Source: Hormiphora californensis
Taxonomy: Eukaryota; Animalia; Ctenophora
Length of the DNA: 64,000 bases
Direction: 5' to 3'
Assembly: GCA_020137815.1 (NCBI GenBank)
Contig: CM035352.1
Location: 5,084,001-5,148,000 of the forward strand
The notes below the pieces were generated by a model. It did not search any database and was not told the origin of the DNA. It saw only the letters and a program-made list of their open reading frames with translations. Position numbers and translations under genes: made by a program. This document shows, one piece after another, positions 1-64,000 of this stretch. The first letter of the stretch is position 1; every line of letters starts with the position of its first letter.

Positions 1-780
1 TATGACTGTCTAAAGACGAAATTCAACCAGCATTTTTGAGGGGATCACGTGTCCTCAACAAATGGGTAAAATGATTTGAAATTTACAAGAGCTTCATTGG
101 AATCGTCTAAGGTTCATCTTGATACCATGGTTTTTTTCCATAGCTCTACGTTTAAGTTGCGTTATGACTGTAGGAACATGAAGATTTTTCTATGCTGAGT
201 CTTAGTTGGTATCGGCTCACAACCCCTAATTAGGTGGCTCGGTGTCGTGTGTAATCCCATGATAATCAGCACATATCGTCTCAATTTCATCTAGACACTT
301 GACAGGGTTGTTATGACGATTTGGCAAGGCCCCTGTTAATGTGTAGGATACGCAAGTGGTCTATATCAACCCTATCATGCACTAAGATGTTATTCAAGCA
401 GCTATGAGCTTCATAACAGGGCAAAATGCAATGCGATACCTGAAACCACTTTTGGGAAAATTCCAGTTCTGACAGTCATAAGACATTCTAAACATTGAGC
501 TAGGATAAAAACCCGGGTACCAAAATGACCGCCAGACAATTTCCTACAACTCTTATGAGGGATGCAATGTGATCCAAGCAACTTTGCACTTGTGAATTTT
601 TCAAAACGTGAACCCCGGTCGGATTTCATGAACACGTAATTTTGACTTTACGACGATATATCTGACAATTGGTAAGACTTGGAAAGTCAATCTTGCAACC
701 AAAATGTTCGCCAGACAATTCTCTAGAACACTGGTTTTTGTTAGAACCATTTTGACCGATTTTTCGATCAGTTTTGGTTA

Positions 781-1711
781 ATTATTATAATGAGATCTGA
801 TCAGGATTAAATAGGGAGGAAACTAGAAAAATATCTGGCGAGGGCCGGGCTCGAACCGACAACCTCTGCATTACATGTACATTGCTCTAACCTATTGAGC
901 TACCTCGCCTACAATTTATCTACATTTCCTCTCTCTATATCACTGATCATGCCCTTAGATATTGCAGCTGTAACTCATATAGGAACAAGATAGATAGTAT
1001 CTTCACTCGCTGCATTCTCACGTTTCTCTCTTTTCTCACACAACACGCCCTACTGTACAACAGTGAAGGGGAAACATACAGCGGGCAGATCTCAGGGTGG
1101 AAGGGTCATTTGTTAATTATTATAATGAGATCTGATCAGGATTAAATAGGGAGGAAACTAGAAAAATATCTGGCGAGGGCCGGGCTCGAACCGACAACCT
1201 CTGCATTACATGTACATTGCTCTAACCTATTGAGCTACCTCGCCTACAATTTATCTACATTTCCTCTCTCTATATCACTGATCATGCCCTTAGATATTGC
1301 AGCTGTAACTCATATAGGAACAAGATAGATAGTATCTTCACTCGCTGCATTCTCACGTTTCTCTCTTTTCTCACACAACACGCCCTACTGTACAACAGTG
1401 AAGGGGAAACATACAGCGGGCAGATCTCAGGGTGGAAGGGTCATTTGTTAATTATTATAATGAGATCTGATCAGGATTAAATAGGGAGGAAACTAGAAAA
1501 ATATCTGGCGAGGGCCGGGCTCGAACCGACAACCTCTGCATTACATGTACATTGCTCTAACCTATTGAGCTACCTCGCCTACAATTTATCTACATTTCCT
1601 CTCTCTATATCACTGATCATGCCCTTAGATATTGCAGCTGTAACTGTGTGAGAAAAGAGAGAAACGTGAGAATGCAGCGAGTGAAGATACTATCTATCTT
1701 GTTCCTATATG
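781..1711 (-). mobile_element. Tandem tRNA-like retro-insertion, family A (2.6 x 335-bp units plus inverted 5' segment)
   Basis: Units start at 781, 1116 and 1451. 1645-1715 is the reverse complement of unit sequence. TSD AGTTTTGGTTA at 770-780 and 1712-1722; a single copy is present at the empty paralogous site 6699-6709. Confidence 0.9.
836..909 (-). ncRNA. tRNA-like cloverleaf (Thr-UGU-like, non-canonical A33); further copies at 1171-1244 and 1506-1579
   Basis: GGCGAGG/CCTCGCC acceptor stem, GCTC/GAGC D stem, loop CATGTAA, GTCGG-TTCGAGC-CCGGC T arm, followed by T5. Confidence 0.8.
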
Positions 1712-1887
1712 AGTTTTGGTTAGTTTAATGGAGCCCGGTCATGACCCAAAATCGCAGGTGATGCAAAGACAGTGGGACACCCTGTAGTATCCACTATCCA
1801 CTTTATTTATTGCTTATTATTCTTATAGATATGCTTATTCCCACATAGTAGTATCCACTGTAATTATTGCTTATTCCCACCACCCAG

Positions 1888-28800: not shown

Positions 28801-31800
28801 GTAACCATTACTCCGTGTTTAGAATCATGTCCCAGACAGCCAATACAACATCACCACACACTCCATACCGTGGAGACATTACAACTAATGGTTATGTCTC
28901 TTCTGTCTCGAAGCCATTCTTCCAAGGATCATACTTGGGAACGGATATGAACATTTTGTTGGCGGTTTTCTGCACCGTTATCGGCCTCCTGGCCATTTTC
29001 CTCAATGCTATTGTTGCAATCATCAAAGGACAGAAACCTCGGCATCTCTCGAACAATCTCTTCTTGATGCTGTCAACGAGTGATGGTATCACCGGGGTGT
29101 GCGCATTGTTTCATACTGCCATCTTCATAGTTTTCATGGCAATTCTACCACAGCAAAATGCGCTATTTGTCGATCCGGGTGACCCAAAGTTCGAAATTCT
29201 TTTCTATACTGTTCTGCCCCTTTTTTTTAGAATGAAGTATTTGCAATTTTGGCGATTTTGAGTTATTTATACCATCTTGATCAGGAGAAAAAGATCTACA
29301 AGATGGGCTAAGTCTCGTGTCTCAATCTTCAAAAAATAGAGTGAAGTGTTTTTTGTGAAGTACTTTTATTTTTGAAAAACTGCAGAAAAGTGAAGCAAAT
29401 GGCAATTGCTTCGCTAATATAATTCGGAAATAAATACTGCTTCGTTAAACTTTTCTACCATAGAAGTAATAACCGCAGAAAAATTTGCTTCAGTTGTTTG
29501 CTTCATTTAAAAAATTCTATTGAAATACTTCAATCAGCTGCAGATTTTGTTTGAAGTATTGTCCACTCAGAAGATACTTCACTTCATTTACTTCAATTTG
29601 AAAATGCTTCATAAATCAGTTGCAGATTTTGTTTGAAGTATTTTCAAATCAGAAGATACTTCACTTCATTTACTTCAATTTGAAAATGCTTCATAAATCT
29701 GTGGAATTCAAATGCTTCTTGTCGCATCCAGAAAAAATACTTCATAACTTAAGAATACTTCATTTTTTATTATAATATGTGCCATTTATAACACAAGTCC
29801 GGCCAAATGAAGTAATTTCCAAGATTTGTTCTTTGCTGCAGCATCATCATGATGAAGGTCGAACGGAGGCGATCCCTATAATAATTATTCTATTCTGAGT
29901 AATTATAATTATCGTTCACATCTCGAATTACTCATCCTCACCGTCACAACTACGTCACTCCAATCTCATTCTTCGAACTTAGAACCCCACATTCAAAGGT
30001 AGCATTATGTTCCAGTACCGTACTGTCGTAACGACACAACACAACCAGTTGTTAGGTAACTCAACAAGTGGAGAAGAGATGTCTGGGGGCCGGGGTGATC
30101 ATGATTCTGGGATTATCTCTATGTAAGAGTGTCACTCTGAGACAAAGAGAGAGAGACACCACAAACAGTGTTGTCAAACACTGACCTCATAAGGTTTTAT
30201 AAGTTATTGCCCTAGCGTTTGGTTTCAAATTTACATCATTCCGAAAGGCTAGGGGGCCAGCTGCAGCTGGTTTGAAAACTCAACCTGTCTGGAGTTCAAA
30301 TAGTAGCTAACGGACATCCGTGTGTATCGTATCATGCTGCAGCGGTACAATGTTTCTGTCACTCTCAGACATTTGTTGTAAAATAGTAAAAAATATAGGG
30401 TAAGCCATTTCTCCCACCACACGCAGCTGCTGCTTAGTTAGCCACCATGTACATTGAATGTATACCCGTTTCGTTTTGTCTCTCCTATTGCAATTACAAT
30501 AAACCGTTTTTATTATGATAATAATTATTGTTATCAGGACGTGATTTAAAAGCACGTTACCCTGTTTTTGATGAAACTTCGGAGCCACGAGGGTTAATTG
30601 ACTATGACTATGACTATGACTATGACTATGACTATGGTCTGTCATGGTCTGTCATGGTCTGTCATGGTCTGTCATGGTCTGTCATGCTATAGAGATATCG
30701 ATAAAGAAAGAGTAAAAAGTAAGAGAAAGAGTGAGACAAATTTGATAAAAAGATAGAGAAAAAATAGAGTTAAAAGTGACAGAGTCAAAAATACTTTTAC
30801 AAATACCGGGGACTCGAACCCGGAACCTCGAGGCTTATACGACAATGCCCTAACCACTACACCATCTCCCTTTGTCACACTTGCACCTTGTCTCCCTTTG
30901 TCACACTTGCACCTTGTCTCCCTTTGTAACCCTGTCACCTTGTCCCCCTTTGTCACCCCTGTCACCTTATCTCCAACTGTAACCCCTGTCACCTTGTCTC
31001 CCACAGTAACCCCTGTCACCTTATCTCCCTTTGTCATCCCTGTCACCCTGTCTTCCTTTGTCACCCCTGTCACCTTATCTCCCTTTGGCACACTTGCACC
31101 TTGTCTCCCATTGTAACCCCTGTCACCCTGTCTCCCTTTGTCACCCCTGTCACCTTATCTCCCTTTGTCACACTTGCACCTTGTCTCCCATTGTAACCCT
31201 GTCACCTTGTCCCCCACTGTAACCCCCGTCACCTTATCTCCAATTGTAACCCCTGTCACTTTGCCTCCCACTGTAACCCAGTCACCTTGTCATCCAATCA
31301 ATCATCCCGTCAGTGATCAGTCAGTGATCAGGTACTATCAGGAGGCAGGATAACCCGGGGAAGGGGGTGACCTAGGGAAGGAGGTGAGTTAGGAGGCAGG
31401 ATGACCTGGGGAAGGGGGGTGAGTTAGGGGTCAGGATAACCTAGGGAAGGGGGGTGAGTTAGGAGGCAGGATGATCTAGGGAAGGGGGGGGTGAGTTAGG
31501 GGTCAGGATGACCTAGGGAAGGGGGTGAGTTAGGGGTCAGGATAACCTAGGGAAGGGGGGTGAGTTAGGGGTCAGGATAACCTAGGGAAGGGAGGTGAGT
31601 TAGGGGTCAGGATAACCTGGGGAAGGGGGGTGAGTTAGGAGGCAGGATGACCTAGGGAAGGGGGTGAGTTAGGAGGCAGGATGACCTGGGGAAGGGGGGT
31701 GAGTTAGGAGGCAGGATGACCTGGGGAAGGGGGTGAGTTAGGGGTCAGGATGACCTGGGGAAGGGGGGTGAGTTAGGAGGAGGCAGGATGACCTGGGGAA

Positions 31801-34800
31801 GGGGGGTGAGTTAGGAGGCAGGATAACCTAGGGAAGGGGGGTGAGTTAGAAGGCAGGATAACCTAGGGAAGGGGGTGAGTTAGGAGGCAGGATGACCTGG
31901 GGAAGGGGGGTGAGTTAGGAGGCAGGATGACCTGGGGAAGGGGGTGAGTTAGGAGGCAGGATAACCTAGGGAAGGGGGTGAGTTAGGAGGCAGGATGACC
32001 TGGGGAAGGGGGTGAGTTAGGAGGCAGGATGACCTGGGGAAGGGGGTGAGTTAGAAGGCAGGATAACCTAGGGAAGGGAGGTGAGTTAGGAGGCAGGATG
32101 ACCTGGGGAAGGGGGTGAGTTAGGAGGCAGGATGACCTGGGGAAGGGGGTGAGTTAGGAGGCAGGATGACCTGGGGAAGGGGGTGAGTTAGGAGGCAGGA
32201 TGACCTGGGGAAGGGGGTGAGTTAGGAGGCAGGATGACCTGGGGAAGGGGGTGAGTTAGGAGGCAGGATGACCTGGGAAAGGGGGGTGAGTTAGGGGTCA
32301 GGATAACCTGGGGAAGGGGGTGAGTTAGGGGTGAGGATAACCTGGGGAAGGGGGTGAGTTAAGAGGCAGGATGACCTGGGGAAGGGGGTGAGTTAGGGGT
32401 CAGGATAACCTGGGGAAGGAGGTGAGTTAGGAGGCAGGATAACCTAGGGAAGGGGGTGAGTTAGGGGTCAGGATAACCTGGGGAAGGGGGGTGAGTTAGG
32501 AGGCAGGATGACCTAGGGAAGGGGGTGAGTAAGAAGGCAGGATAACCTAGGGAAGGGGGGTGAGTTAGGGGTCAGGATAACCTAGGGAAGGGGGTGAGTT
32601 AGGGGTCAGGATAACCTAGGGAAGGGGGGTGAGTTAGGGGTCAGGATGACCTGGGGAAGGGGGGTGAGTTAGGAGGCAGGATAACCTAGGGAAGGGGGTG
32701 AGTTAGGAGGCAGGATGACCTGGGGAAGGGGGGTGAGTTAGGGGTCAGGATAACCTAGGGAAGGGGGGTGAGTTAGGGGTCAGGATAACCTGGGGAAGGG
32801 GGGTGAGTTACGAGGCAAGATGACCTGGGGAAGGGGGTGAGTTAGGAGGCAGGATGACCTGGGGAAGGGGGTGAGTTAGGAGGCAGGATGACCTGGGGAA
32901 GGGGGGTGAGTTAGGGGTCAGGATAACCTGGGGAAGGGGGTGAGTTAGGAGGCAGGATGACCTGGGGAAGGGGGTGAGTTAGGAGGCAGGATGACCTAGG
33001 GAAGGGGGGTGAGTTAGGGGTCAGGATGACCTAGGGAAGGGGGGTGAGTTAGGAGGCAGGATGACCTGGGGAAGGGGGGTGAGTTAGGAGGCAGGATGAC
33101 CTGGGGAAGGGGGTGAGTTAGGAGGCAGGATGACCTGGGGAAGGGGGGTGAGTGAGGGCCTGTCACCTTATATCCCTTTGTCACCCCTGTCACCTTATCT
33201 CCAATTGTAACCCCTGTCACTTTGCCTCCCATTGTAACCCCTGTCACTTTGCCTCCCACTGTCTCCCATGTCACTGAACTATCACACTCACGGGAATTTG
33301 AAATGTTTGTAAAAAATTAAAGAATACGGATACAAATCATCCAAATATTAACAAAATATATTGTCATCTAACTGTTCTGTCCTTACATTCCCACACTCCT
33401 AGACAAATACTCCTCTTCGTGAATAACCCGAATGGAGACAATCTCACTCCCGTTCCCTCTCATCGATATTATCTCTCTGTCAGACCCTTTCTCTATCTCT
33501 CAGCAACCGACCGGACCAAATAAACAACCAATCCGAGCTCATTATTCAGGTCACGTGACTGGTTATCAGCCAATCGATTGTTAAAACATGTAATGAACTG
33601 GCCTGTGTGTCTGTCTGTGTGTCTGTCTGTGATCTGTTTGTATGTCTGTGATCTGTTTGTATGTCTGTCATATTTTATGAACACGGACCTGTGTAGAGGT
33701 CGGAAGAAAATTCTTGAATCTCCAATCTCCATGTTTCACTCTGATATTACAAGCCGAACTCAACCAATTTCAAAGTATGACTCGTACCGGAACAGATTAA
33801 TCTTCCAGATTTTATCTGCAGGTTCGTCTTAGTTTGAGGGTTGCCATAGCGTTTTTCTGTTTTCGCTCAATTTATCAGCACCATGATTTTAACATTCCGC
33901 CCGAAGGGCGGGCGGCCCATCTCTTTATAATGCTGCTGCAGGCTGCTGCAGGCTGCTGCAGTTGTAATTTGTGCGTCTGTTTGTCTGTGCGTCTGTTTGT
34001 CTGCAGCTGCTGCTCTGGAGTTACTTTCAAGACTAGCAAGAATTCTAACACATTTTATACTTCACTGCGTGTTAAATGAAAATTAACTTCGTTTGTGATT
34101 TTATCCAAAATATTGAAGTAAGATTGCGATTTTGAAGCACATGTACACTTTTGTTCGATTAAGTTACTTTTAGGCATTTTGAATACAGTTCTGAAGAAGT
34201 ATTTTTAGGAATGAAGTAATTACTGAAGTATATGCAAGTGAAGTACTTTTTAGGTGCTTTTGTTGCTATTATGATGAAGTATTTTTTTGAGTGAAGTAAT
34301 TACTGAAGTATCTACCACGAAAAATTATGCTTCAGTCGATATCAGTCTAGCAACGGAAGTATTTTCAAAACTGTAATATAAGTGAAGTAACCAACAGAGT
34401 AAGGCATCAATTTTGATGCCTGACATCAATTTGAGACAAATTTGATGATAGCTGATAATTGGAAGTCCTGCAGAATTCCTTCAGGATTCTTGTGGTATAA
34501 GTCATAAATCGTTTGACGTACTATTTGGGCTTCTATGACAATTTTAGTTCCGAAAAACCCTCTAAAAAACTTTAAAGTCGATTTTCTCGAAACTTAAAAA
34601 ATGCAAATACTTCATTCTAAAAAAAAGGGGCAGTGTTATGATCACATACTTCATCAGCGTCTTTTCTATTCGCATCTCGATGGCTACAAGTGTAATTTTC
34701 ATTGGCATCCGAACTGGAATTACCCTATTTCCGCTAAGGGTTAACACCGCCCGTCAGAAGTCTGTTAACATCGTTGTCGTGGTTACCTACTTGGTTACCT

Positions 34801-49800: not shown

Positions 49801-52800
49801 TTACTGTATAATAATGCGTGCTTGTTTAGTAACTCTGCTCCTAGTTGGTGCTGCCACCGCCGCCAATGTAATTTGTACTGACTACGGCAAAGATATTGCC
49901 GGTGATGATAAAATAACAGGTAATATATAGCGTCCGTTTGTTTTTGAACAAACACAGTTAATATTAATGGGGGGGGGGTGCAGCCCCAAAAAAATTCAAA
50001 CTTTTTCCGAAACCCAGGGTATGGTTGGTTTTTTTGGTCGTTTTTGGTCGTTTTGTTTTGTTGAAATTTCTTTGATTTTTTTTGGTCGTTTTTGATTTTT
50101 TTTTTTTGGTCGTTTTTGATTTTTTTGATCGTTTTGATTTTTTTGATCGTTTTTGAATTTTTTGATCGTTTTTAATTTTTTGATCGTTTTTGATTTTTTT
50201 GATTGTTTAATGTTGAACAAAAAATTTAAAAAAAATCAAAAACGATCAAATAAAATAAAAAACGATCAAAAAAATTCAAAAAAAATCAAAAACGATCAAA
50301 AAAGATCAAAAAAATCAAAAAAGATCAAAATAAATCAAAAAAAATCAAAAAAAGATAAAAAAAAATCAAAAAAAAATCAAAAAAAGATCAAAAAAAAAAA
50401 AAAAAAAATCAAAACCGACCAAAAAAAATCAACACTTTTGAAAATCCAGGGTATGGTTGGTTTTTTTTGGGCTGCACTCCCCCCCCCCTATTAATATAGT
50501 GAAATACATATCGAGAGGAAAGAAATACATATCTATTAACTACTGTCATATACCGATATTGCATCGAGTTCATACATTTGCAGTTTCATATTTGTTTCAT
50601 TTTGAATGCTCTGTTACACTGACATACACCCGTCTAAGTCTCTCTTTAATCCTAAATCTATCAATTTACAACCGCATCGCCTAGTCTGGTTCAGTCATTC
50701 TGTCAAATAGTGCTCCTTTCCTGTATCTTTCAACACAGTACCTCTAATATCTGATCTCTAACGCACTCAATACTTGCTCGTTTTCTTGTACTCAGGTCAC
50801 GTCCATAATATGCTCTGTCTCAAAACATACTCCTTGTGCCATGCTCCTCTATATCCCCTAATGATTCCAAAATTTCAAGTTTCTATTTCAAATGTGGTCT
50901 CAGTAGCATTAAAACTGTCAAATACATCATTCTGCATTCGGATACAGAATAACTTTGCGGATGTGACATAAACGAATTGCCGGGATTCTCCAGACTCTCT
51001 CACAATCAGTTCATACTTTGCAGTTTCATATTGTTTCATTTTGAATGCTCTGTTACACTGATACACCCGTCTAAGTCTCTCTTTAATCCTAAATCTATCA
51101 ATTTACAACCGCATCGCCAGTCTGGTTCAGTCATTCTGTCAAATGTGCTCCTTCCTGTATCTTTCAACACAGTACCTCTAATATCTGATCTCTAACGCAC
51201 TCAATACTTGCTCGTTTTCTTGTACTCAGGTCACGTCCATAATATTGCTCTGTCTCAAACATACTCCTTGCCAATGCTCCTCTATATCCCCTAATGATTC
51301 CCAAAATTTCAAGTTTCTATCTTCAAAACTGTGGTCTCAGTAGCATTAAAACTGTCAAATACATCATTCTGCATTCTGGATACAGAATAACTTTGCGGAT
51401 GTGTGACATAAACGAATTGCCGGGATTCTCCAGACTCTCTCACAATCAGTTTTACATTTGCAGTTTCATATTTGTTTCATTTTGAATGCTCTGTTACACT
51501 GACATACACCGTCTAACTCCTTTAATCCTAAACTATCAATTTACAACCGCATCGCCTAGTTGGTTCAGTCATTCTGTCAAATAGTGCTCTTCCTGTATCT
51601 TTCAACACAGTACCTCTAATATCTGATCTCTAACGCACTCAATACTTGCTCGTTTTCTGTACTCAGGTCACGTCCATAATATTGCTCTGTCTCAAAACAT
51701 ACTCCTTGTGCCAATGCTCCTCTATATCCCCTAATGATTCCCAAAATTTCAAGTTTCTATCTTCAAAACTGTGGTCTCAGTAGCATTAAAACTGTAAATA
51801 CATCATTCTGCATTCTGGATACAGAATAACTTGCGGATGTGTGACATAAACGATTGCCGGGATCTCCAGATCTCCTCACAATCAGTTCATACATTTGCAT
51901 TTCATATTGTTCATTTTGAATGCTCTGTTACACTGACATACACCGTCTAAGTCTCTCTTTAATCCTAAATCTATCAATTTACAACGCATGCCTAGTCTGG
52001 TTCAGTCATTCTGTCAAATAGTGCTCCTTTCCTGTATCTTTCACACAGTACCTCTATATCTGATCTCTAACGCACTCAATACCTGCTCGTTTTCTTGTAC
52101 TCAGGTCACGTCCATAATATTGCTCTGTCTCAAACATACTCCTTGTGCCATGCTCCTCTATATCCCCTAATGATTCCCAAAATTTCAAGTTTCTATCTTC
52201 AAAACTGTGGTCTCAGTAGCATTAAAACTGTCAAATACATCATTCTGCATTCTGGATACAGAATAACTTTGCGGATGTGTGACATAAACGAATTGCCGGG
52301 ATTCTCCAGACTCTCTCACAATCAGTTCATACATTTGCAGTTTCATATTTGTTTCATTTTGAATGCTCTGTTACCATGACATACACCCGTATTAGTCTCT
52401 CTTTAATCCTAAATCTATCAATTTACAACCGCTCGCCTAGTCTGGTTCAGTCATTCTGTCAAATAGTGCTCCTTCCTGTATCTTTCAACACAGTACCTCT
52501 AATATCTGATCTCTAACGCACTCAATACTGCTCGTTTTCTTGTACTCAGGTCACGTCCATAATATTGCTCTGTCTCAAAAAATACTCCTTGTGCCAATGC
52601 TCCTCTATATCCCCTAATGATTCCCAAAATTTCAAGTTTCTATCTTCAAAACTGTGGTTCAGTGCATTAAAACTGTCAAATACATCATTCTGCATTCTGG
52701 TACAGATAACTTTGCGGATGTGTGACATAAACGAATTGCCGGGATTCTCCAGACTCTCTCACAATCAGTTTATACATTTGCAGTTTCATATTTGTTTCAT

Positions 52801-55800
52801 TTTGAATGCTCTGTTACACTGACATACACCCGTCTAAGTCTCTCTTTAATCCTAAATCTATCAATTTACAACCGCATCGCCTAGTCTGGTTCAGTCATTC
52901 TGTCAAATAGTGCTCCTTTCCTGTATCTTTCAACACAGTACCTCTAATATCTGATCTCTAACGCACTCAATACCTGCTCGTTTTCTTGTACATCATTCTG
53001 CATTCTGGATACAGAATAACTTTGCGGATGTGGACATAAACGAATGCCGGGATTCTCCAGACTCTCTCACAATCAGTTATACATTTGCAGTTTCATATTT
53101 GTTTCATTTTGAATGCTCTGTTACACTGACATAACCCGTCTAAGTCTCTCTTTAATCCTAAATCTATCAATTTACAACCGCATCGCCTAGTCTGGTTCAG
53201 TCATTCTGTCAAATAGTGCTCCTTTCCTGTATCTTTCAACACAGTACCTCTAATATCTGATCTCTAACGCACTCAATACCTGCTCGTTTTCTTGTACATC
53301 ATTCTGCATTCTGGATACAGAATAACTTTGCGGATGTGTGACATAAACGAATTGCCGGGATTCTCCAGACTCTCTCACAATCAGTTCATACATTTGCAGT
53401 TTCATATTTGTTTCATTTTGAATGCTCTGTTACACGACATACACCCGTCTAAGTCTCTCTTTAATCCTAAATCTATCAATTTACAACCGCATCGCCTAGT
53501 CTGGTTCAGTATTCTGTCAAATAGTGCTCCTTTCCTGTATCTTTCAACACAGTACCTCTAATATCTGATCTCTAACGCACTCAATACCTGCTCGTTTCTT
53601 GTACATCATTCTGCATCTGGTACAGATAACTGTTCCGATGTGTGACATAAACGAATTGCCGGGATTCTCCAGACTCTTCACAACAGTTCATACATTTGCA
53701 GTTTCATATTTGTTTCATTTGAATGCTCTGTTACACTGACATACACCCGTCTAAGTCTCTCTTTAATCCTAAATCTATCAATTTACACACCGCATCGCCT
53801 AGTCTGGTTCAGTCATTCTGTCAAATAGTGCTCCTTTCCTGTATCTTTCAACACAGTACCTCTAATATCTGATCTCTAACGCACTCAATACCTGCTCGTT
53901 TTCTTGTACATCATTCTGCATTCTGGATACAGAATAACTTTGCGGATGTGTGACATAAACGAATTGCCGGGATTCTCCAGACTCTCTCACAATCAGTTCA
54001 TACATTTGCAGTTTCATATTTGTTTCATTTTGAATGCTCTGTTACACTGACATACACCCGTCTAAGTCTCTCTTTAATCCTAAACTATCAATTTACAACC
54101 GCATCGCCTAGTCTGGTTCAGTCATTCTGTCAAATAGTGCTCCTTTCCTGTATCTCTTCAAACACAGTACCTCTAATATCTGATCTCTAACGCACTCAAT
54201 ACCTGCTCGTTTCTTGTACATCATTCTGCATTCTGGATACAGAATAACTTTGCGGATTGTGACATAAACGAATTGCCGGATTCTCCAGACTCTCTCACAA
54301 TCAGTTCATACATTTGCAGTTTCATATTTGTTTCATTTTGAATGCTCTGTTACACTGACATAACCCGTCTAAGTCTCTCTTTAATCTAAATCTATCAATT
54401 TACAACCGCATCGCCTAGTCTGGTTCAGTCATTCTGTCAAATAGGCTCCTTTCCTGTATCTTTCAACACAGTACTCTTAATCTGATCTCTAACGCACTCA
54501 ATACTGCTCGTTTTCTTGTACTCAGGTCACGTCCATAATATTGCTCTGTCTCAAAACAACTCCTTGTGCCAATGCTCCTCTATATCCCTAATGATTCCCA
54601 AAATTTCAAGTTTCTATCTTCAAAACTGGGGTTCAGTAGCATTAAAACTGTCAAATACATCATTCTGCATTCTGGATACAGAATAACTTTGCGGATGTGT
54701 GACATAAACGAATTGCCGGATTCTCCAGACTCTCTCACAATCAGTTCATACATTTGCAGTTTCATATTTTTTCATTTGAATGCTCTGTTACACTGACATA
54801 CACCCGTCTAAGTCTCTCTTTAATCCTAAATCTATCAATTTACAACCGCATCGCCTAGTCTGGTTCAGTCATTCTGTCAAATAGTGCTCCTTTCCTGTAT
54901 CTTTCAACACAGTACCTCTAATATCTGATCTCTAACGCACTCAATACCTGCTCGTTTTCTTGTACATCATTCTGCATTCTGGATACAGAAAACTTGCGGA
55001 TGTGTGACATAAACGAATTGCCGGGATTCTCCAGACTCTCTCACAATCAGTTCATACATTTGCAGTTTCATATTTGTTTCTTTGAATGCTCTGTTACACT
55101 GACATACACCCTCAAGTCTCTCTTTAATCCTAAATCTATCAATTTACAACCGCATCGCCTGTTGGTTCAGTCATTCTGTCAAATAGTGCTCCTTTCCTGT
55201 ATCTTTCAACACAGTACCTCTAATATCTGATCTCTAACGCACTCAATACCTGCTCGTTTTCTTGTACATCATTCTGCATTCTGGATACAGAATAACTTTG
55301 CGGATGTGTGACATAAACGAATTGCCGGGATTCTCCAGACTCTCTCACAATCAGTTCATACATTTGCAGTTCTATTTGTTTCATTTTGAATGCTCTGTTA
55401 CACTGACATACACCCGTCTAAGTCTCTCTTTAATCCTAAATCTATCAATTTACAACCGCATCGCCTAGTCTGGTTCAGTCATTTGTCAAATAGTGCTCCT
55501 TTCCTGTATCTTTCAACACAGTACCTCTATATCTGTCTCTAAAGCATCAATACCTGCTCGTTTTCGTACATCATTCTGCATGCTGATACAGAATAACTTT
55601 GCGGATGTGTGACATAAACGAATTGCCGGGATTCTCCAGACTCTCTCACAATCAGTTCATACATTTGCAGTTTCATATTTGTTTCATTTTGAATGCTCTG
55701 TTACACTGACAACACCCGTCTAAGTCTCTCTTTAATCTAAATCTATCAATTTACAACCGCATCGCCTAGTCTGTTCAGTCATTCTGTCAAATAGTGCTCC

Positions 55801-58800
55801 TTTCCTGTATCTTTCAACACAGTACCTCTAATATCTGATCTCTAACGCACTCAATACCTGCTCGTTTTCTTGTATCTTTCAACACAGTACCTCTAATATC
55901 TGATCTCTAACGCACTCAATACCTGCTCGTTTTCTTGTACATCATTCTGCATTCTGGATACAGAATAACTTTGCGGATGTGTGACATAAACGAATTGCCG
56001 GGATTCTCCAGACTCTCTCACAATCAGTTCATACATTTGCAGTTTCATATTTGTTTCATTTTGAATGCTCTGTTACACTGACATACACCCGTCTAAGTCT
56101 CTCTTTAATCCTAAATCTATCAATTTACAACCGCATCGCCTAGTCTGGTTCAGTCATTCTGTCAAATAGTGCCCCTTTCCTGATCTTTCAACACAGTACC
56201 TCTAATATCTGATCTCTAACGCACTCAATACCTGCTCGTTTTCTTGTACTAGCCACCACCCACCCTCCACCCCACCCACCTCCCCACCCTTGCCCTTCCC
56301 AATTTAGAGGACTTTGTGAAACACGCCAGTACAGGGACAATCCTTGTGTTTTGTGCACTAAGTCGCTTATCGCGTGTAACAACTCACAATTGTTCTTATC
56401 TGTCCACCCGTCTTGTCCTATAGAACATCGTACACATTCTAGGGACGCTACAATCTGTCCCACCTCTTTTGTATTTGATCATTTTTGTTCATCTTGATCT
56501 CTACTGGAAGTGGGAATGGTACACCTCTCATCTGATCACCAACAACATCACGGTACCAATCATACATCAAAAAGCTGTAAGTTCATCTGTCTGTATTGTC
56601 TGTTCATCTATTGTGTACCATGATAATGATTCCGGAGTAAACCTTACCAATCAATAATTTAATTAGAGCTACTATAGACAGACTACCCCAGACCCAAGCT
56701 TGAGAAGTGTCCACTCGACGGACCGTCGTCGTAACAAACAAACGAACAGGCCTACCTGCACAGCCACCCAAGCCTGAAAATGTGCCCCCTAACTTGTCTT
56801 TTTGCTTATTCGCAAGATAACTGCAATGTCCTCACGGGGCGGGATGCGAAGAGTGCAACCGACCTTTAACCGTGGGGGCTGCGTAAGTGTCTTGCAAGTA
56901 CAATGACTGACTGACAATATGAATGCAATGATACAACTGACCACAACACGATGACAGACGCTATGACGAGGTTGCAAGTCGTTCTTGCCCTAACGGGCAG
57001 AGTTTGGCACGCTATAACCTATCTGTACCACCACCACCACCACCGATATTGCATCCTAGGTAAGACCGTGGTTGGACCTAGGAGTGGTCCCAATGATGAC
57101 AATACATCGGAGGCAAGATGTCCTGGAGGAACGATTGTGGGCCACTGCACAATGCGAGGTCAAGATTTCAAACGTGGTAGTGATGGCGTGACTATCGAGG
57201 ATAACGGCCGAAAGTGTGTTGCTCACGTTGGACATGGTGGTGGACATCTTCACGCTGTGGCTATATGTGTACCAGAGAACGAATATAGAGTTGTTAAAGG
57301 CCGAACAAACGGCGGGGCAAGGTGTCCTGGTGGTTTCAGACAGGTCGGGTGTATCGCACACTCAAACCATGGCACTCAGCTGGGTAAACCAGGAAAACAG
57401 TTGGGCTCCATGGAAAGATTAGGGAAGTTCGATGAACGTGGACAGCTGAAGAAGGATAGCAAGCAGCCGTGCGAGGCGAGGTGCGATGGCCCCAACTGCA
57501 TAGTGCATGCTATTTGCCGCCGAAACTAATTACGTGCCTCTATCGTTAATTTGATAAAGCAATTCTCCGATTTAATTATCTTTGTTGTCTTGGTGACATA
57601 CTAGACACATACGCGAGATCGAAGTCGCACAGCGACTGAGATCGAGCTCACACATAGCTCCGTTATTGATTTTGGAGCAAAGTTTTTTAAATCCGACTGC
57701 AACGAACTACTAAATCGATTTGCATCTGGTTTACAAAAAGCATGAAGTTGAAGACAATTTGGTAACCGTCAGGTTATATCAGAGGGCTATTATTATAATA
57801 CCATGATGAGTAGGGGCCGGGGGGGGGGGGGGCTATAATACCAATATACCATGATGGTGGATGATATCCCTGCATATCTTGAGGAAGACAGCTCGGTATC
57901 TCTCCTCAGTTGAGGTGTGTTGCAGTAATACAGACACAGAATTGAGGACGTCCCTGCACCTCCCACCCTCCTTCAGGTATTGCATTAGTAGGACTCTGAG
58001 GAGAATGGGTTTAGAGATCTGCCTTCCAGAGACAGGGTAAGTCACGTACACAATTTGGGCAAAATAACTCGTGTTTCCTTGCTTTTTGTCAGCAGGAGTA
58101 CAACACCCCAGGTATATTTACGATATATATTTGGGTTGTTTTGAGAAAAAACCATGTCCAGAACTATCGATATAATAATTAATAATGGTGAAAAGTATAA
58201 AATAGTATAAAATAGAGGCTGGGTATACTCACTGGGCAATGTCAGGTAGAGTCTCAGTATGCCTTATTGGGAGACTGGGAACCATGGTAACCAGAAGATT
58301 CAGTAGGGTGAACACGCACTCTGCCATTTGTCGCTCCTGGGCCATATCATGGCAAAATGCCACCAAGCTTTGGACCAGGTCACTCTGAATAGGGATCAGG
58401 GGTTCAGTATACAGTGTATACTATACACTCACTATACAGTCGGGCCCCGATTTACCGGAATGGTTGGGAATTTAAGCGTTTTGGCCGGTAAATCGGAGTT
58501 AATATATATGGAAGACCTGCAGTATAATAATATGTAGTACCCCTCTTCTAATCGATAGCTGGGAAATGAAATAGAGTAACAAATAGAATGAAAATGTTTG
58601 AACTTACAGCAGCAACAGGTACAGATTTGCACCAATTGAACAGAATGTTGATGATAGTTAGCCTCAACTCTACCCTTCCATCACCCGCTGACCGGGCCGG
58701 GTTGTCCGATATCTCATCCAGGGCACCCTGTATATAAAACAGGGTTAGTGGTGTCATTAGTAATGACAGGGTGATGACTCATCACTCTGAATAACAGACA

Positions 58801-61800: not shown

Positions 61801-64000
61801 CCAATCCCTCAAACACTTCAGGACGTGAGTGATGACATCTGACATCGTTGAGGCGTCAAAATAACCACTGTTTACCAATTCCTCTGCTATCTTGCATCTG
61901 AGATAGAGAGAGGGGAGAGGGAGTCAGGAGAGGAAGAGGGGAGAGCGGAAAGATATATTTAGCAGAGAGAGATTTGAATTCAGAATTCGGGAATGCTTGC
62001 CAGAGCACGATGGAGAAAGTCCAAAATGAAAATGCGCCCCTCCCCCCTCTTCTGACGATGCGCGCCCCACTCCAAACTTTTATCATAACTGTGTCATCGC
62101 GCCCTACGTCAGGTTCTGTTACCGCCAATCAAAAACTGTGACTTGATCTGCCCCACAACCCACAAAATTCCGTCTCAGATAAGAAGACGTACACCGTTCT
62201 GATGAAATTATCACACTTCACAGCTGTCACTTGTCAGTTAACTTACAATATTATTTTCTTCTGGTCGAGTGTACGGTTGTTAAGATCTTGAAAGAGGAAT
62301 GGAAATGTGGTGGAGCGCCTCTCTTTAGCAAGGGGTTGATCATCGCTAGATCGGATCGAACTAAGTTGACCATGGGCCAGGATAGCTTTGGAGCACAGGT
62401 TACAAAATATAGTAGTCGCGCTGAAATAAAAAGAAATGTTATATAGCGGTGTCTCCTTGTCTTGTTCGACCCTCCCTCCCCTAAAAAGGGCTTGAACAAA
62501 ACAAGTGTCTCCCACTCAAATTATTATAGGAATTCAACTTACAGAGATCCAAAGGGGCTTGTGTCACGCATTTCCATGTCTGAAATCAGGCCTTCATAAA
62601 CCGATCTGATCACCTAAAAAATCTGAATTTTAGGATCGGGTATTCACTCACATTACACAAAAATAAAAACTCTCGAAACTTTTCCCGCACTATGTGTGTA
62701 AGTATGAGCGGCTAGGATGTTGCCAGTTGCCCGCACTAACCTCATCTAGATGTTGACCCCTCTCATTTTCATCCAGTTGCAACCAGAGGGAGATAACGGA
62801 TCCAGCAAACTCCATAACCTCACCCTGTATAATTGGGATCAAACTGGCAACATGTGTATTGTATTTCTCTCGGGGGAATTTGTAAGGAGGCATTATACAT
62901 GATATACTGTCTCGGTATAAGAGACTTTCTGGTACAAACAAGACATATTTTTTAGATCTGCGTTATGAGTTATGTTCCAACAGGGAACATAACGACAGTG
63001 CATGATATCCAGCACCTACCTTATTTCCTGAATAATGAGTTCAGAGCAAGAATTAAATAGGGAAGAAAATCGAAAAATACTGGGTTTGACCGGGAATTGA
63101 ACCAGGGACCTCCAGAGAGACATGCCAAACCCAGTATTTTTCGATTTTCTTCCCTATTTAATTCTTGCTCTGAACTCATTATTCAGAATACTAATTAATC
63201 TCTCCTTAACCGAGTTCTGCCCGTGTATGTGTGAGATTCCCCATTAAACTGTTGTACAGAGGGCGTGTGTGTGTGTTGATCACCAGAAGGAGATATCATA
63301 ATTACTTCCCTTTATCACATGGTGTCTAGCTAAGGGCAGGAGCTTGAATATAGAGCGATGAAATGCGATCAGTACATAGGGTTTGGTAGCTTAGTGGTTT
63401 ATAGCTCCGAGCATGTCTCTCTGGAGGTCCCTGGTTCAATTCCCGGTCAAACCCAGTATTTTTCGATTTTCTTCCCTATTTAATTCTTGCTCTGAACTCA
63501 TTATTCAGAATACTAATTAATCTCTCCTTAACCGAGTTCTGCCCGTGTATGTGTGAGATTCCCCATTAAACTGTTGTACAGAGGGCGTGTGTGTGTGTTG
63601 ATCACCAGAAGGAGATATCAAAATTACTTCCCTTTATCACATGGTGTCTAGCTAAGGGCAGGAGCTTGAATATAGAGCGATGAAATGCGATCAGTACATA
63701 GGGTTTGGTAGCTTAGTGGTTTATAGCTCCGAGCATGTCTCTCTGGAGGTCCCTGGTTCAATTCCCGGTCAAACCCAGTATTTTTCGATTTTCTTCCCTA
63801 TTTAATTCTTGCTCTGAACTCATTATTCAGAATACTAATTAATCTCTCCTTAACCGAGTTCTGCCCGTGTATGTGTGAGATTCCCCATTAAACTGTTGTA
63901 CAGAGGGCGTGTGTGTGTGTTGATCACCAGAAGGAGATATCAAAATTACTTCCCTTTACCTTATTTCCCTTGTAAAGCAATGCCCGGGTAGGTTTAACGA
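13657..64000 (-). CDS. ATM: ATM serine/threonine kinase (PIKK family), multi-exon; 5' end lies beyond the window
   Basis: GT-AG exons that join in frame: 15920-16060 (GGINVPK...RQFVK), 15591-15689 (GNDDMRQD), 15163-15351 (VLPLSQVSGLIEW), 14691-14924 (VGLGDRHLANILLD..GELIHIDLG), 14416-14544 (PERVPFRLTRDMVDGLG), 14086-14209 (LEVFLHDPLYNW), 13657-13826 (FATC). Upstream exons, e.g. ~47175-47337 (LLHRWI..SSFPYSHFGY...FYR), resemble ATM N-terminal/FAT regions. Exons above ~48 kb are assigned mainly from strand, splice sites and continuity. Confidence 0.93.
13963..14071. mobile_element. ~108-bp hAT-type MITE. Other copies: ~3017-3133, ~5050-5151, 15796-15910, 25337-25444, ~33502-33575 (partial), 36413-36521, 38420-38528, 39672-41103 (split)
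   Basis: CAGGAACCGACCG...CGGTCGGTTCCTG termini; 8-bp TSDs CTAACAAG, CCTCCTTA, GTGTGCAT, GTTATACC. Confidence 0.92.
14691..14924 (-). CDS. ATM: ATM kinase catalytic exon
   Basis: DRHxxN catalytic loop and HIDLG motif; AG/GT boundaries; 234 nt in phase. Confidence 0.95.
16124..16950. mobile_element. MITE with poly-G/poly-C termini (ACATGTTAATT family)
   Basis: GGGG..GACATGTTAATT / AATTAACATGTC..CCCC; TSD AAGTAAA(G); related copy at 27146-28577. Confidence 0.85.
18890..19446 (-). CDS. ATM: ATM FAT-region exon
   Basis: Long helical ORF (ARAHLALALFADEQ) bounded by AG and GT, lying between other ATM exons. Confidence 0.75.
21027..21102. mobile_element. 76-bp element, TTGTC...GACAA, 8-bp TSD
   Basis: TSD CGAGAACT; second copy at 48823-48988 with TSD AACATGGT. 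Confidence 0.85.
22188..25239 (+). pseudogene. Apparently intronless LDL-receptor class A repeat rhodopsin-type GPCR with several frameshifts, nested antisense in an ATM intron
   Basis: Signal peptide; LDLa motifs (CDGHIDCNSGADE, DGVVDCVGGADE, CDLVDDCGDGSDE); TM segments incl. LICATDFCCWMPF and NSVINPLLY. Frame breaks may be consensus errors. Confidence 0.8.
26522..26764. mobile_element. MITE; a related right end lies at ~47550-48163
   Basis: TIR TTATGTTCTAACCCTC / GAGGGTTAGAACATAA. Confidence 0.7.
27146..28577. mobile_element. Poly-G/C-terminus MITE with nested AGCTAAAA-family MITE (27601-28211)
   Basis: Outer TSD TTTTATA; inner GGGG-TCCAGCCC...GGGCTGGA-CCCC with TSD AATTTT; host element matches 16124-16950. 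Confidence 0.88.
28827..35603 (+). CDS. Rhodopsin-class 7TM GPCR, interrupted by a transposon, nested antisense in an ATM intron
   Basis: 28827-29213 has N-glycosylation sites, TM1 and TM2 (LSTSD). 34638-35603 has TM3-7 (LNAALNPMII). Removing 29214-34637 restores the in-frame FYTV-MITYF junction. Confidence 0.85.
30598..30868 (-). mobile_element. tRNA-derived SINE with compound microsatellite tail
   Basis: A box TGGTGTAGTGG, B box GGTTCGAGTCC, pyrimidine-rich body, tail (CATGACAGAC)n(CATAGT)n. Confidence 0.7.
30866..33270. repeat. Compound minisatellite: ~27-bp CCCTGTCACCTT-type repeats flanking a ~34-bp G-rich array (31340-33153)
   Basis: About 50 copies of GGGAAGGGGGTGAGTTAGGAGGCAGGATGACCTG. 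Confidence 0.93.
35805..36040. repeat. 42-bp AT-rich tandem repeat
   Basis: About 5 copies of TCTTGTTTAGAYWTTCCAATTTTAGTGATTGATTTTAACAAT. Confidence 0.9.
36689..38077. mobile_element. Foldback MITE with TTAA TSD and GG termini (Kolobok-like)
   Basis: TTAA|GGGTACGCTAACC...GGTTAGCGTACCC|TTAA; ~600-bp inverted arms. Confidence 0.88.
39736..41065. mobile_element. Near-perfect 1.3-kb palindromic element (TAG..CTA termini, 3-bp TSD, Academ-like) inserted in a hAT MITE
   Basis: TAA|TAGGCCAGTCATATGA...TCATATGACCGGCCTA|TAA; the MITE halves rejoin across it. Confidence 0.88.
41287..41887 (-). CDS. ATM: ATM HEAT/solenoid-region exon
   Basis: 200-codon open frame with CAG acceptor and GTAAGG donor on the ATM strand. 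Confidence 0.7.
44200..44870. repeat. ~24-bp minisatellite GACAGCTGACCCCGCTCCAGTAAA
   Basis: Tandem copies visible directly. Confidence 0.92.
45525..46984. mobile_element. Foldback element with CACGG..CCGTG termini and 4-bp TSD CTCT (Chapaev/CMC-like)
   Basis: ~710-bp inverted arms with a short spacer; no ORF. Confidence 0.88.
47565..48148. mobile_element. AGCTAAAA-family MITE
   Basis: Near-identical to 27601-28211; 6-bp TSD AGGGTT; the empty target GTAAAGGGAGGGTTAGAACATAAC is seen at ~26741. Confidence 0.9.
49814..57529 (+). CDS. Two-exon secreted Cys/His-rich protein with PCSK9-CHRD/resistin-like modules, nested antisense in an ATM intron
   Basis: Exon 1 49814-49919 (MRACLVTLLLVGAATAA signal peptide, phase-1 GT) joins exon 2 57060-57529 (CCTAG acceptor) in frame: KTVVGPRSGP..SEARC..C...KCVAHVGHGGGHLHAVAIC. 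Confidence 0.8.
49969..50488. mobile_element. Poly-G/C-terminus MITE
   Basis: GGGG-TGCAGCCC...GGGCTGCA-CCCC; TSD TATTAAT; T-rich and A-rich inverted arms. Confidence 0.85.
50566..57041 (+). mobile_element. 6.5-kb retroposed insertion: satellite array plus ~790-bp unique 3' end with (CCA)n tail
   Basis: 14-bp direct repeat ACCGATATTGCATC at 50552-50565 and 57042-57055; tail CCACCACCACCACC; stem-loop TGCCC-TAAC-GGGCA just upstream of the tail. Confidence 0.75.
50570..56248. repeat. Satellite array of ~440-bp and ~309-bp units
   Basis: About 16 units; the short unit lacks the CTCAGGTCACGTCC...AAAACTGTCAAATA segment. Confidence 0.95.
59863..60849. mobile_element. Foldback element with TAGGCCAGTCA termini and 3-bp TSD ATA (related to 39736-41065)
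   Basis: ATA|TAGGCCAGTCA...TGACTGGCCTA|ATA; ~430-bp arms. Confidence 0.88.
63029..63956 (+). mobile_element. Tandem tRNA-like retro-insertion, family B (inverted 5' segment plus 2.6 x 322-bp units)
   Basis: 63029-63125 is inverted; direct units run from 63126 with period 322. TSD TACCTTATTTCC at 63017-63028 and 63957-63968. Confidence 0.9.
63379..63455 (+). ncRNA. tRNA-like cloverleaf; second copy at 63701-63777
   Basis: GGGTTTGG/TCAAACCC acceptor stem, A box TAGCTTAGTGG, loop CATGTCT, B box GGTTCAATTCC, followed by T5. Confidence 0.75.

Follow-up and report, generated by a model that had tools for sequence, protein, structure and literature searches.

What does the DNA between two tRNA-like modules do when those modules belong to a tandem repeat and not to a tRNA gene cluster? 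The question is raised by a locus of the ctenophore Hormiphora californensis, at the end of the 64,000-nt stretch analyzed here (GenBank assembly GCA_020137815.1, contig CM035352.1, positions 5,084,001 to 5,148,000, forward strand; hereafter the window). A spacer at 63456-63700 separates two tRNA-like modules of a 322-bp repeat that we call family B, and a related repeat, family A, lies on the minus strand near the start of the window. The initial annotation proposed that this spacer folds into a three-way junction and a long stem that closes the unit around the tRNA. Our analysis revealed that the helices are real and form a conserved, partly covarying fold, that the units are a young non-autonomous retroelement copied from two fixed internal start zones, and that the copied RNA has a defined linear 5' end. 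That the fold is the platform on which copying is organized is a proposal we regard as evenly poised between acceptance and doubt.

The spacer carries a conserved and partly covarying fold

The features of the family B insertion, with those of the fold placed on it, are as follows.
63017-63028, plus strand: left target-site duplication (TACCTTATTTCC), an exact 12-nt repeat of 63957-63968
63029-63125, minus strand: inverted 5' arm, the reverse complement of unit ~33-130, its outer end inside the reverse transcriptase (RT) start zone E1
63126-63958, plus strand: direct arm of 2.6 tandem 322-bp units (70-322, 1-322 and 1-258; blastn segments), ending in the RT start zone E2
63379-63455, plus strand: tRNA-like head, A box TAGCTTAGTGG and B box GGTTCAATTCC intact, anticodon loop non-canonical (ARAGORN; Rfam tRNA, 34.4 bits)
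63456-63488, plus strand: closing stem, 5' strand (trailer, unit 78-110), in the minimum free energy (MFE) fold and by RNAalifold, base-pair probabilities 0.57-1.0
63459-63463, plus strand: run of five T residues (T5 run), 4 nt past the tRNA-like head, conserved in families A, A2 and B and doubling as part of the closing-stem 5' strand
63489-63493, plus strand: helix P1, 5' strand GCTCT, partner 63661-63665 (RNAalifold; alternative register in B alone)
63494-63539, plus strand: P2 hairpin GAACTC/GAGTTC, with a 34-nt A/U-rich loop containing E1 (63508-63521); P = 0.94
63540-63544, plus strand: helix P3, 5' strand TGCCC, partner 63656-63660 or GGGCG at 63583-63587; invariant in all families, the two pairings competing
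63561-63585, plus strand: inner hairpin CCCC..ACTGT-TGT-ACAG.GGG, invariant and within the most conserved block; the motif has 216 copies in the genome
63601-63637, plus strand: hairpin (consensus helix 8) followed by E2 (63631-63637, ...ACTTCCCTTT); RNAalifold and base-pair probabilities
63656-63697, plus strand: 3' strands of P3 (63656-63660), P1 (63661-63665) and the closing stem (leader), containing an invariant TATA-like ATATAGAG at 63670-63677
63698-63700, plus strand: ATA leader; the A at 63698 is -3 from the tRNA-like head and is the template RNA 5' end as placed by foldback junctions
63701-63777, plus strand: second tRNA-like head (ARAGORN, Rfam)
63957-63968, plus strand: right target-site duplication, matching 63017-63028

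The three abutting helices claimed for family B were present base for base (GCTCT and GAACTC at 63489-63499, GAGTTC and TGCCC at 63534-63544, GGGCA and GGAGC at 63656-63665) and comprise 5 bp including one G-U, 6 bp and 5 bp. Read on the minus strand, family A contained the corresponding series CTGATCA/GATCTCA ... TGAGATC/TGCCC ... GGGCA/TGATCAG and has the same fold, with CTGATCA/TGATCAG as P1 and GATCTCA/TGAGATC as P2. Pairing of the sequence 3' of one tRNA-like module with the sequence 5' of the next was also found as described (TCG.ATTT/AAAT.CGA in B, TTTCCTC/GAGGAAA in A, CTAT/ATAG in both), as was the inner hairpin, which does not vary across the families.

A search of the genome (110.7 Mb in 45 contigs) identified a third family, A2, with a period of 332 bp and 85% identity to A, which makes up an array of 13 units on another chromosome. 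The P1 sequences of A, A2 and B all differ and each pairs, in agreement with the earlier claim that sequence changes while pairing is kept. P1 of A2 (CCTGAACA/TGTTCAGG) is a clean compensatory change relative to A, from CTGATCA/TGATCAG to CTGAACA/TGTTCAG, and P1 of B is a wholly different sequence that retains pairing. Two further pairs changed on both sides in B, namely column pair 119-162 in P2 (U-A to A-U) and pair 108-319 in the closing stem (C-G to U-A). RNAalifold applied to A, A2 and B returned the model of the initial annotation plus one further hairpin domain, and the single-family MFE folds of B, A and A2 each gave a cloverleaf and a long imperfect trailer/leader stem extended by P1.

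These comparisons draw on three lineages, two of them closely related, and on a model derived from the same sequences. Pairing was kept in 90.8% of cells under the model, compared with 32-47% when the 3' partners were slid by 1-3 columns. Pairs altered on both sides numbered 11, compared with 0-4 in the slid controls, and the observed pairing values were matched by none of 500 shuffles. The consensus energy gave z = -3.9 against column-shuffled alignments. A diverged B-like variant, recovered in contigs from two marine RNA runs, had 8 differences, 7 of them at positions unpaired in the model; the eighth converts a T-stem C-G to U-G (positions mapped by hand onto the RNAalifold model). Taken together, these data confirm that the helices are real and constitute a conserved, partly covarying fold.

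The units are a young retroelement copied from two internal start zones

Each family is represented by ~100 or more hit segments spread over all chromosomes, and the core motif occurs 216 times genome-wide, giving an element of >200 copies. At about 16 insertions examined, direct target duplications of 8-23 bp (mostly 10-13) were identified. The copies are 5'-truncated at many positions, and their 3' ends are confined to two narrow zones, the RT start zones E1 (unit 126-143), inside the P2 loop, and E2 (unit 253-269), 3' of the hairpin within the P3 domain. Two-armed insertions in opposite orientation with recognisable ends had one E1 arm and one E2 arm in every case (11/11); three other two-armed insertions had one odd end each. 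Both arms read as tRNA-sense RNA that was copied inwards from the outer ends. The 3' termini (...ACTTCCCTTT in B, ...TTGTTCCGATAT in A2) are not an A-rich, simple-repeat or long interspersed element (LINE)-shared tail. The template of the arrays continues beyond both start zones, and arrays reach about 16 plus 8 nearly identical units.

Both insertions in the window conform to this architecture. The family B array (Tandem Repeats Finder period 322, 2.6 copies, 99% matches, at the window's end) is listed above. The family A insertion is bounded by a 10-nt duplication, AGTTTTGGTT, at 770-779 and 1712-1721; its 335-bp repeat occupies 777-1645 on the minus strand, and its tRNA-like module scores 56.5 bits (Rfam), better than that of B.
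770-1721, minus strand: family A insertion of 335-bp units, with tRNA-like heads at 836-909, 1171-1244 and 1506-1579 and an inverted arm at ~1645-1715

These analyses show that insertion proceeds by target-primed reverse transcription of a tRNA-sense RNA, with one start zone per target strand. The units are a young non-autonomous retroelement and not a tRNA gene cluster. A DNA transposon or miniature inverted-repeat transposable element (MITE) was rejected, since neither the length nor the break point of the inverted repeats is constant, the duplications are of variable length and the copies are 5'-truncated. Random twin priming was rejected as well; the outer end of the inverted arm is fixed.

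Large arrays of B units were also seen in head-to-head arrangement at G000:C1:6445559-6453250 and G000:C9:6472771-6478986 (~24 and ~19 units, respectively), each bounded by E2 on one outer side and by E1 on the opposite side. A unit beside the A2 array (L075, G000:C7:838600-839040) was 78% identical with A/T-run noise, and may be poorly assembled or decayed.

The template RNA begins three nucleotides ahead of a tRNA-gene mimic

Head-to-head arm junctions have their axis at the 5' end of the tRNA-like module. Seven family B foldbacks had only TA, TATA, TATATA or TATATATA between the two heads, and three further junctions kept exactly ATA ahead of GGG. The leader reads ...C, ATA, GGG, and given these junction contents both cDNAs therefore reached A(-3), their self-complementary ends being joined with 0-4 nt of overlap. 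Ten independent junctions thus show that the template RNA has a defined linear 5' end at A(-3). An RNase P cut was rejected as the source of this end, since RNase P would leave +1, whereas the junctions lie at -3.

For comparison we used 18 genuine tRNA genes of the genome (L206-L223), in which a TATA-like box lies near -30 and a T4-T7 run is found 2-12 nt past the gene. The units carry the invariant TATA-like ATATAGAG at -33 to -26, intact A and B boxes and the conserved T5 run (unit 81-85) 4 nt after the head, and in A and A2 the sequence AAATTGT adjoins the head. Because the TATA-like box, the A and B boxes and the T5 run are arranged as in the genuine genes, the 5' end at -3 is best read as an RNA polymerase III (Pol III)-type transcription start. 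The genuine genes also displayed an AATTGCA/AATTGCC-like motif at about -17 to -11 that, with the TATA-like box, looks like a lineage-specific set of Pol III promoter elements.

The resemblance to tRNA extends to the heads themselves, which score above the Rfam threshold (56.5 bits in A, 34.4 bits in B) within gene-like flanks. The anticodon loop of B, CAUGUCU, has A33 and C37 where the canonical residues are U33 and a purine at 37. Between A and A2 the anticodon arm has been replaced and all other arms are common; A2 is called 'Ser' by ARAGORN but is 73 nt long and has no long variable arm.

Words of the unit sequence were present in marine metatranscriptome runs from ten studies. The contigs examined from these RNA runs were mostly insertions at other loci within longer transcripts, and one 283-nt contig crosses a unit boundary. 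This shows presence of the sequence in RNA libraries, not a unit RNA. Rare B insertions ending at the T5 run (unit 87-90) were identified at L077 (G000:C8:4508450-4509350) and L061 (G000:C1:6216655-6216965). The former begins at -5 and contains two full units before its T5-run end, as if two T5 runs had been read through and transcription had stopped at the third.

A Penelope-like enzyme is the most likely partner

Penelope-like insertions consist of tandem units next to which lies an inverted copy truncated at its 5' end; only one end has an extra segment, and the duplications vary. This architecture has been attributed to Penelope-like elements and to no LINE (PMC8557442). The purified Anolis enzyme cuts and extends both strands, and its cDNA begins at two internal RNA sites that are non-homologous to the target, with the RNA 3' of the start being required; the extra segment forms a 'tail' at one end (PMC11167929). 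The units described here showed the same combination of tandem units, inverted 5'-truncated arm, variable duplication and one-end tail. Each start zone is followed 3' by a conserved block, E1 by the block from TGCCC to GGGCG and E2 by the block from GGGCA to GAAATG. The genome holds intact open reading frames (ORFs) of 808-953 codons for an RT with a GIY-YIG endonuclease domain. We propose a Penelope-like RT/GIY-YIG endonuclease as the most likely partner enzyme, because enzymes of this class are known for cutting both strands, extending both and initiating at two internal sites.

Two of these autonomous copies were characterized by their surroundings. In one (L225, G000:C7:1748500-1752700, minus strand), a hammerhead-like core made up of CTGAAGA, a 5-bp helix and GAAA precedes an intact RT/GIY-YIG ORF of 953 codons by 48 nt. 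In the C4 copy, whose 808-codon ORF is at C4:2368361, this core recurs ~310 nt 3' of the ORF; an Rfam scan, run on that copy only, did not detect it. The 808-codon Penelope-like ORF (L202/L074, G000:C4:2364800-2372300) lies between a 56-bp tandem array upstream and a 31-bp array downstream, and copies of a 177-bp repeat (85% identical) flank it on either side, the arrangement that pseudo-LTRs would produce (LTR, long terminal repeat).

The fold as a possible platform for reverse transcription

The explanation we favour, in which belief and doubt are about equal, is that the helices serve as the conserved scaffold in the ~245-nt body of this element. The unit has the build of a whole tRNA gene, with a TATA-like box at ~-30, A and B boxes within the head and a T5 run. 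cDNA synthesis begins at the two fixed internal zones E1 and E2, and the arms either meet at the RNA 5' end, giving a foldback, or run into further units, giving tandem arrays. Three conserved blocks are mutually complementary, the trailer with the leader (closing stem) and TGCCC with GGGCA (P3), and the variable stretches between them, P1 and P2, covary. The closing stem, P1, P2 and perhaps P3 could then gather the three blocks into one junction, which the reverse transcriptase may bind as a platform that positions it at E1 and E2. The full fold would form only in transcripts that cross from one unit into the next. With the 3' strands of P1, P3 and the closing stem all located past E2, a copy of one unit would be unable to rebuild the fold, and only arrays would act as sources.

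Two suggestions of the initial annotation are carried over in modified form. The idea of a selected RNA fold in which the cloverleaf caps a rod was right in that the fold is conserved and partly covarying, with P1 and P2 branching from the trailer/leader stem. An RT-recruitment role is likely and fits the data because both start zones sit on the scaffold and a conserved block follows each of them 3'; the platform role itself is what we infer from that arrangement.

Several observations weigh against this explanation. The comparison rests on only three lineages with more than half of the pairs (31/55) unchanged, and no covariation was seen in P3, in the inner hairpin or in the inner closing-stem parts a and b; invariant stems could reflect protein binding or promoter function instead of pairing. 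The exact three-way junction dominates the ensemble in A only, not in B or A2. For B alone, the ensemble probability was 0.12 for P1 and 0.06 for P3, the competitors being a 10-bp stem (UUCUUGCUCU/AGGGCAGGAG) and UGCCC/GGGCG; the low value for P1 arises because the 10-bp stem uses GGGCA. TGCCC has two possible partners, GGGCA (P3) or the equally invariant GGGCG after the inner hairpin, and TGCCC/GGGCG was favoured in B (0.85) and A2 (0.90) alone, with TGCCC/GGGCA favoured only in A (0.78). P2 and P3 probabilities were near 0 in A2, where P2 contains a mismatch, and the B position homologous to TTTCCTC/GAGGAAA in the closing stem has a U.U mismatch. Single-sequence MFE z scores were modest (B -1.4, A -2.1, A2 -3.6). 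The antisense consensus gave z = -5.7, equal to or better than the sense strand, and the calculation therefore does not settle which strand folds.

Transcription and the partner enzyme raise further difficulties for it. The T5 run should stop most Pol III transcripts before E1 and E2, which leaves the polymerase of the template unexplained; candidates are read-through, RNA polymerase II working from the shared TATA and start, or some other route. A single Pol III transcript cannot account for arrays of 16 plus 8 units. The units had no similarity to RT/GIY-YIG copies with their flanks by blastn or nhmmer (three copies only), and no hammerhead was found in the units (Rfam at E<=10; CUGANGA...GAAA search of both strands of a dimer), which counts against Penelope-like membership. 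The E1-E2 distance of ~120 nt is three to four times the Penelope-like 'tail' of 30-40 nt.

Searches for additional lineages did not enlarge the comparison. Pattern searches of the genome excluding A, A2 and B gave matches of which those examined were chance, mutated copies or segmental duplication, and sixteen more core-motif sites in the genome were ordinary truncated copies. A metagenome scan with the core motif returned 120 loci, none with further similarity. Subfamily substitutions gave only four shared variants as a selection test, the copies being too young.

Alternative explanations for the complementarity

The complementarity may have no function in RNA and instead represent DNA-level signals (a TATA-like box, a terminator, protein sites), an old foldback relic around a tRNA gene or folds of the antisense cDNA. 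We consider this unlikely, although it would accommodate the 31 invariant pairs, the antisense consensus z of -5.7, the placement of ATATAGAG and the T5 run at the real TATA-like and terminator positions, and the fact that such insertions routinely create inverted repeats. However, a decaying relic would show no compensatory changes, and P1 differs in the three families yet pairs, P2 (119-162) and closing-stem pair 108-319 have changed on both sides and still pair, and the wild marine variant spares the stems.

Distinctly unlikely, in our assessment, is a retrozyme-like mobile RNA in which a host-type tRNA gene cassette replaces the hammerhead. The unit-length RNAs would then be circles closed by the leader/trailer stem, or reusable end-to-end templates, with Penelope-type copying from the two structured sites.

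The tRNA-like modules could also act as punctuation, with RNase P (and RNase Z) cutting multimers at them in place of the retrozyme hammerhead and the rod presenting the sites. Consistent with this, the acceptor, D and T arms are kept and the anticodon arm is free to change (A vs A2), 5' ends cluster at the head, and the units have no hammerhead, though the Penelope-like elements of the genome have one. Yet the ends lie at -3 with the templated ATA leader retained, not at the +1 of RNase P, and head and trailer are contiguous in inserted copies, so RNase Z had not cut the templates. We therefore regard tRNA punctuation as very unlikely.

The initial annotation had viewed the fold as expected for a monomer circle and had raised an unrecognised ribozyme. 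Combined, these ideas describe a monomer that is excised and circularised to a viroid-like rod, with rolling-circle reverse transcription making the arrays and the junction forming part of a new self-cleaving ribozyme. Near-identical arrays of up to about 16 plus 8 units are in keeping with this; Pol III could not traverse 16 T5 runs, which makes reused unit-length templates attractive, and the closing stem places unit position 322 beside position 1. The 283-nt contig that spans a unit boundary was considered as well, but a tandem DNA array or a multimeric RNA would yield it just as well, and template jumping or unequal exchange can also grow arrays. A circle is not needed for the fold, as a linear RNA running from the tRNA-like head into the next unit has both strands of every helix, and the ten junctions give a linear 5' end at A(-3) with the TATA-directed start geometry of real tRNA genes. 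That end is accounted for by the tRNA-gene-type promoter without a ribozyme. Scanning of both arrays against Rfam, at the gathering threshold and at E<=10, identified tRNA only and no ribozyme family; there was no CUGANGA...GAAA hammerhead core on either strand, and the junction has no unpaired nucleotides for a catalytic core. For a viroid-like rod the MFE z scores are modest (-1.4 to -3.6), beside a consensus z of -3.9. We judge the combined scheme highly improbable and circularity as such to have a low probability.

That the helices are chance matches picked from two related sequences is barely credible: they are short (5-7 bp), B alone prefers other pairings and has an MFE z of only -1.4, but the slid-partner and shuffle controls and the column-shuffle z disfavour chance, and A2, which was not used by the initial annotation, keeps P1 by a compensatory change.

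Relation to known mobile RNAs

The units resemble metazoan non-LTR retrozymes, which derive from Penelope-like elements and are non-autonomous, in being non-coding tandem units of a few hundred nt, dispersed as arrays with variable target duplications, and in having tandem plus inverted 5'-truncated arms with two internal RT starts and an extra segment at one end only. They differ in having a tRNA-gene-like cassette instead of the type I hammerhead of every retrozyme unit or any other known ribozyme, an RNA 5' end that is a transcription start at -3, start zones ~120 nt apart versus 30-40, and no sequence in common with the three Penelope-like copies examined. In tRNA-derived short interspersed elements (SINEs), as here, the transcript has at its 5' end a tRNA-like head that carries A and B boxes, followed by a unique body, and the copies show 5' truncation and target duplications and depend on an RT encoded elsewhere. 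Unlike SINEs, the units have a conserved T5 run immediately after the head, lack a tail that is A-rich or a simple repeat, start cDNA in two internal zones, insert as foldbacks and tandem arrays, and include a promoter-like upstream leader within the repeat.

Penelope-like elements (Penelope/Poseidon, Nematis, Naiad) have the same insertion architecture, and in vitro the Anolis enzyme shows both-strand nicking and extension with an internal RT start non-homologous to the target. The units, however, encode no protein and could belong to this group only as a passenger. Plant retrozymes and viroid-like circular RNAs are comparable as small non-coding RNAs whose predicted fold is branched and rod-like and for which a multimer or rolling-circle stage is proposed, but the units lack a ribozyme, LTRs, a primer-binding site and a polypurine tract, their predicted stability is only moderate and there is no evidence of circles. 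The 3' tRNA-like end of the Mauriceville retroplasmid and the MALAT1 mascRNA are likewise tRNA mimics within a longer RNA that are handled by host or element enzymes; in the units, cDNA synthesis does not start at the mimic but 55-180 nt downstream, and the mimic stays on the template.

Other repeats in the window

Two regions of the window carry repeats of other kinds. At 50567-55874, three tandem arrays adjoin one another; their periods are 437, 308 and 302 bp (94-96% matches), and they have no relation to the tRNA-like units. A G-rich 34-bp minisatellite of ~52 copies occupies 31368-33157, with 27-bp C-rich repeats on either side (30865-31291 and 33159-33275).

Significance

In the literature we found no description of an array-forming retroelement that is headed by a tRNA gene and starts cDNA at two structured sites. 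The element is a variant that combines known kinds (a SINE and a non-autonomous Penelope-like element), not a new category. Were the retrozyme-like reading with its tRNA cassette true, the element would represent a new class of tRNA-anchored rolling retroelements, with no precedent outside those that bear ribozymes. For annotation, the units are a warning, as they resemble tRNA gene clusters, MITEs or palindromes. Retroelements that form arrays and foldbacks need not carry a hammerhead, and a tRNA-gene cassette can supply the RNA 5' end; a tandem retroelement free of hammerheads thus bears on the role of the ribozyme in retrozymes. If the fold is the RT platform, two Penelope-type cDNA starts would be tied to defined helices in a non-coding RNA of 322 nt, a size amenable to mutation and probing.

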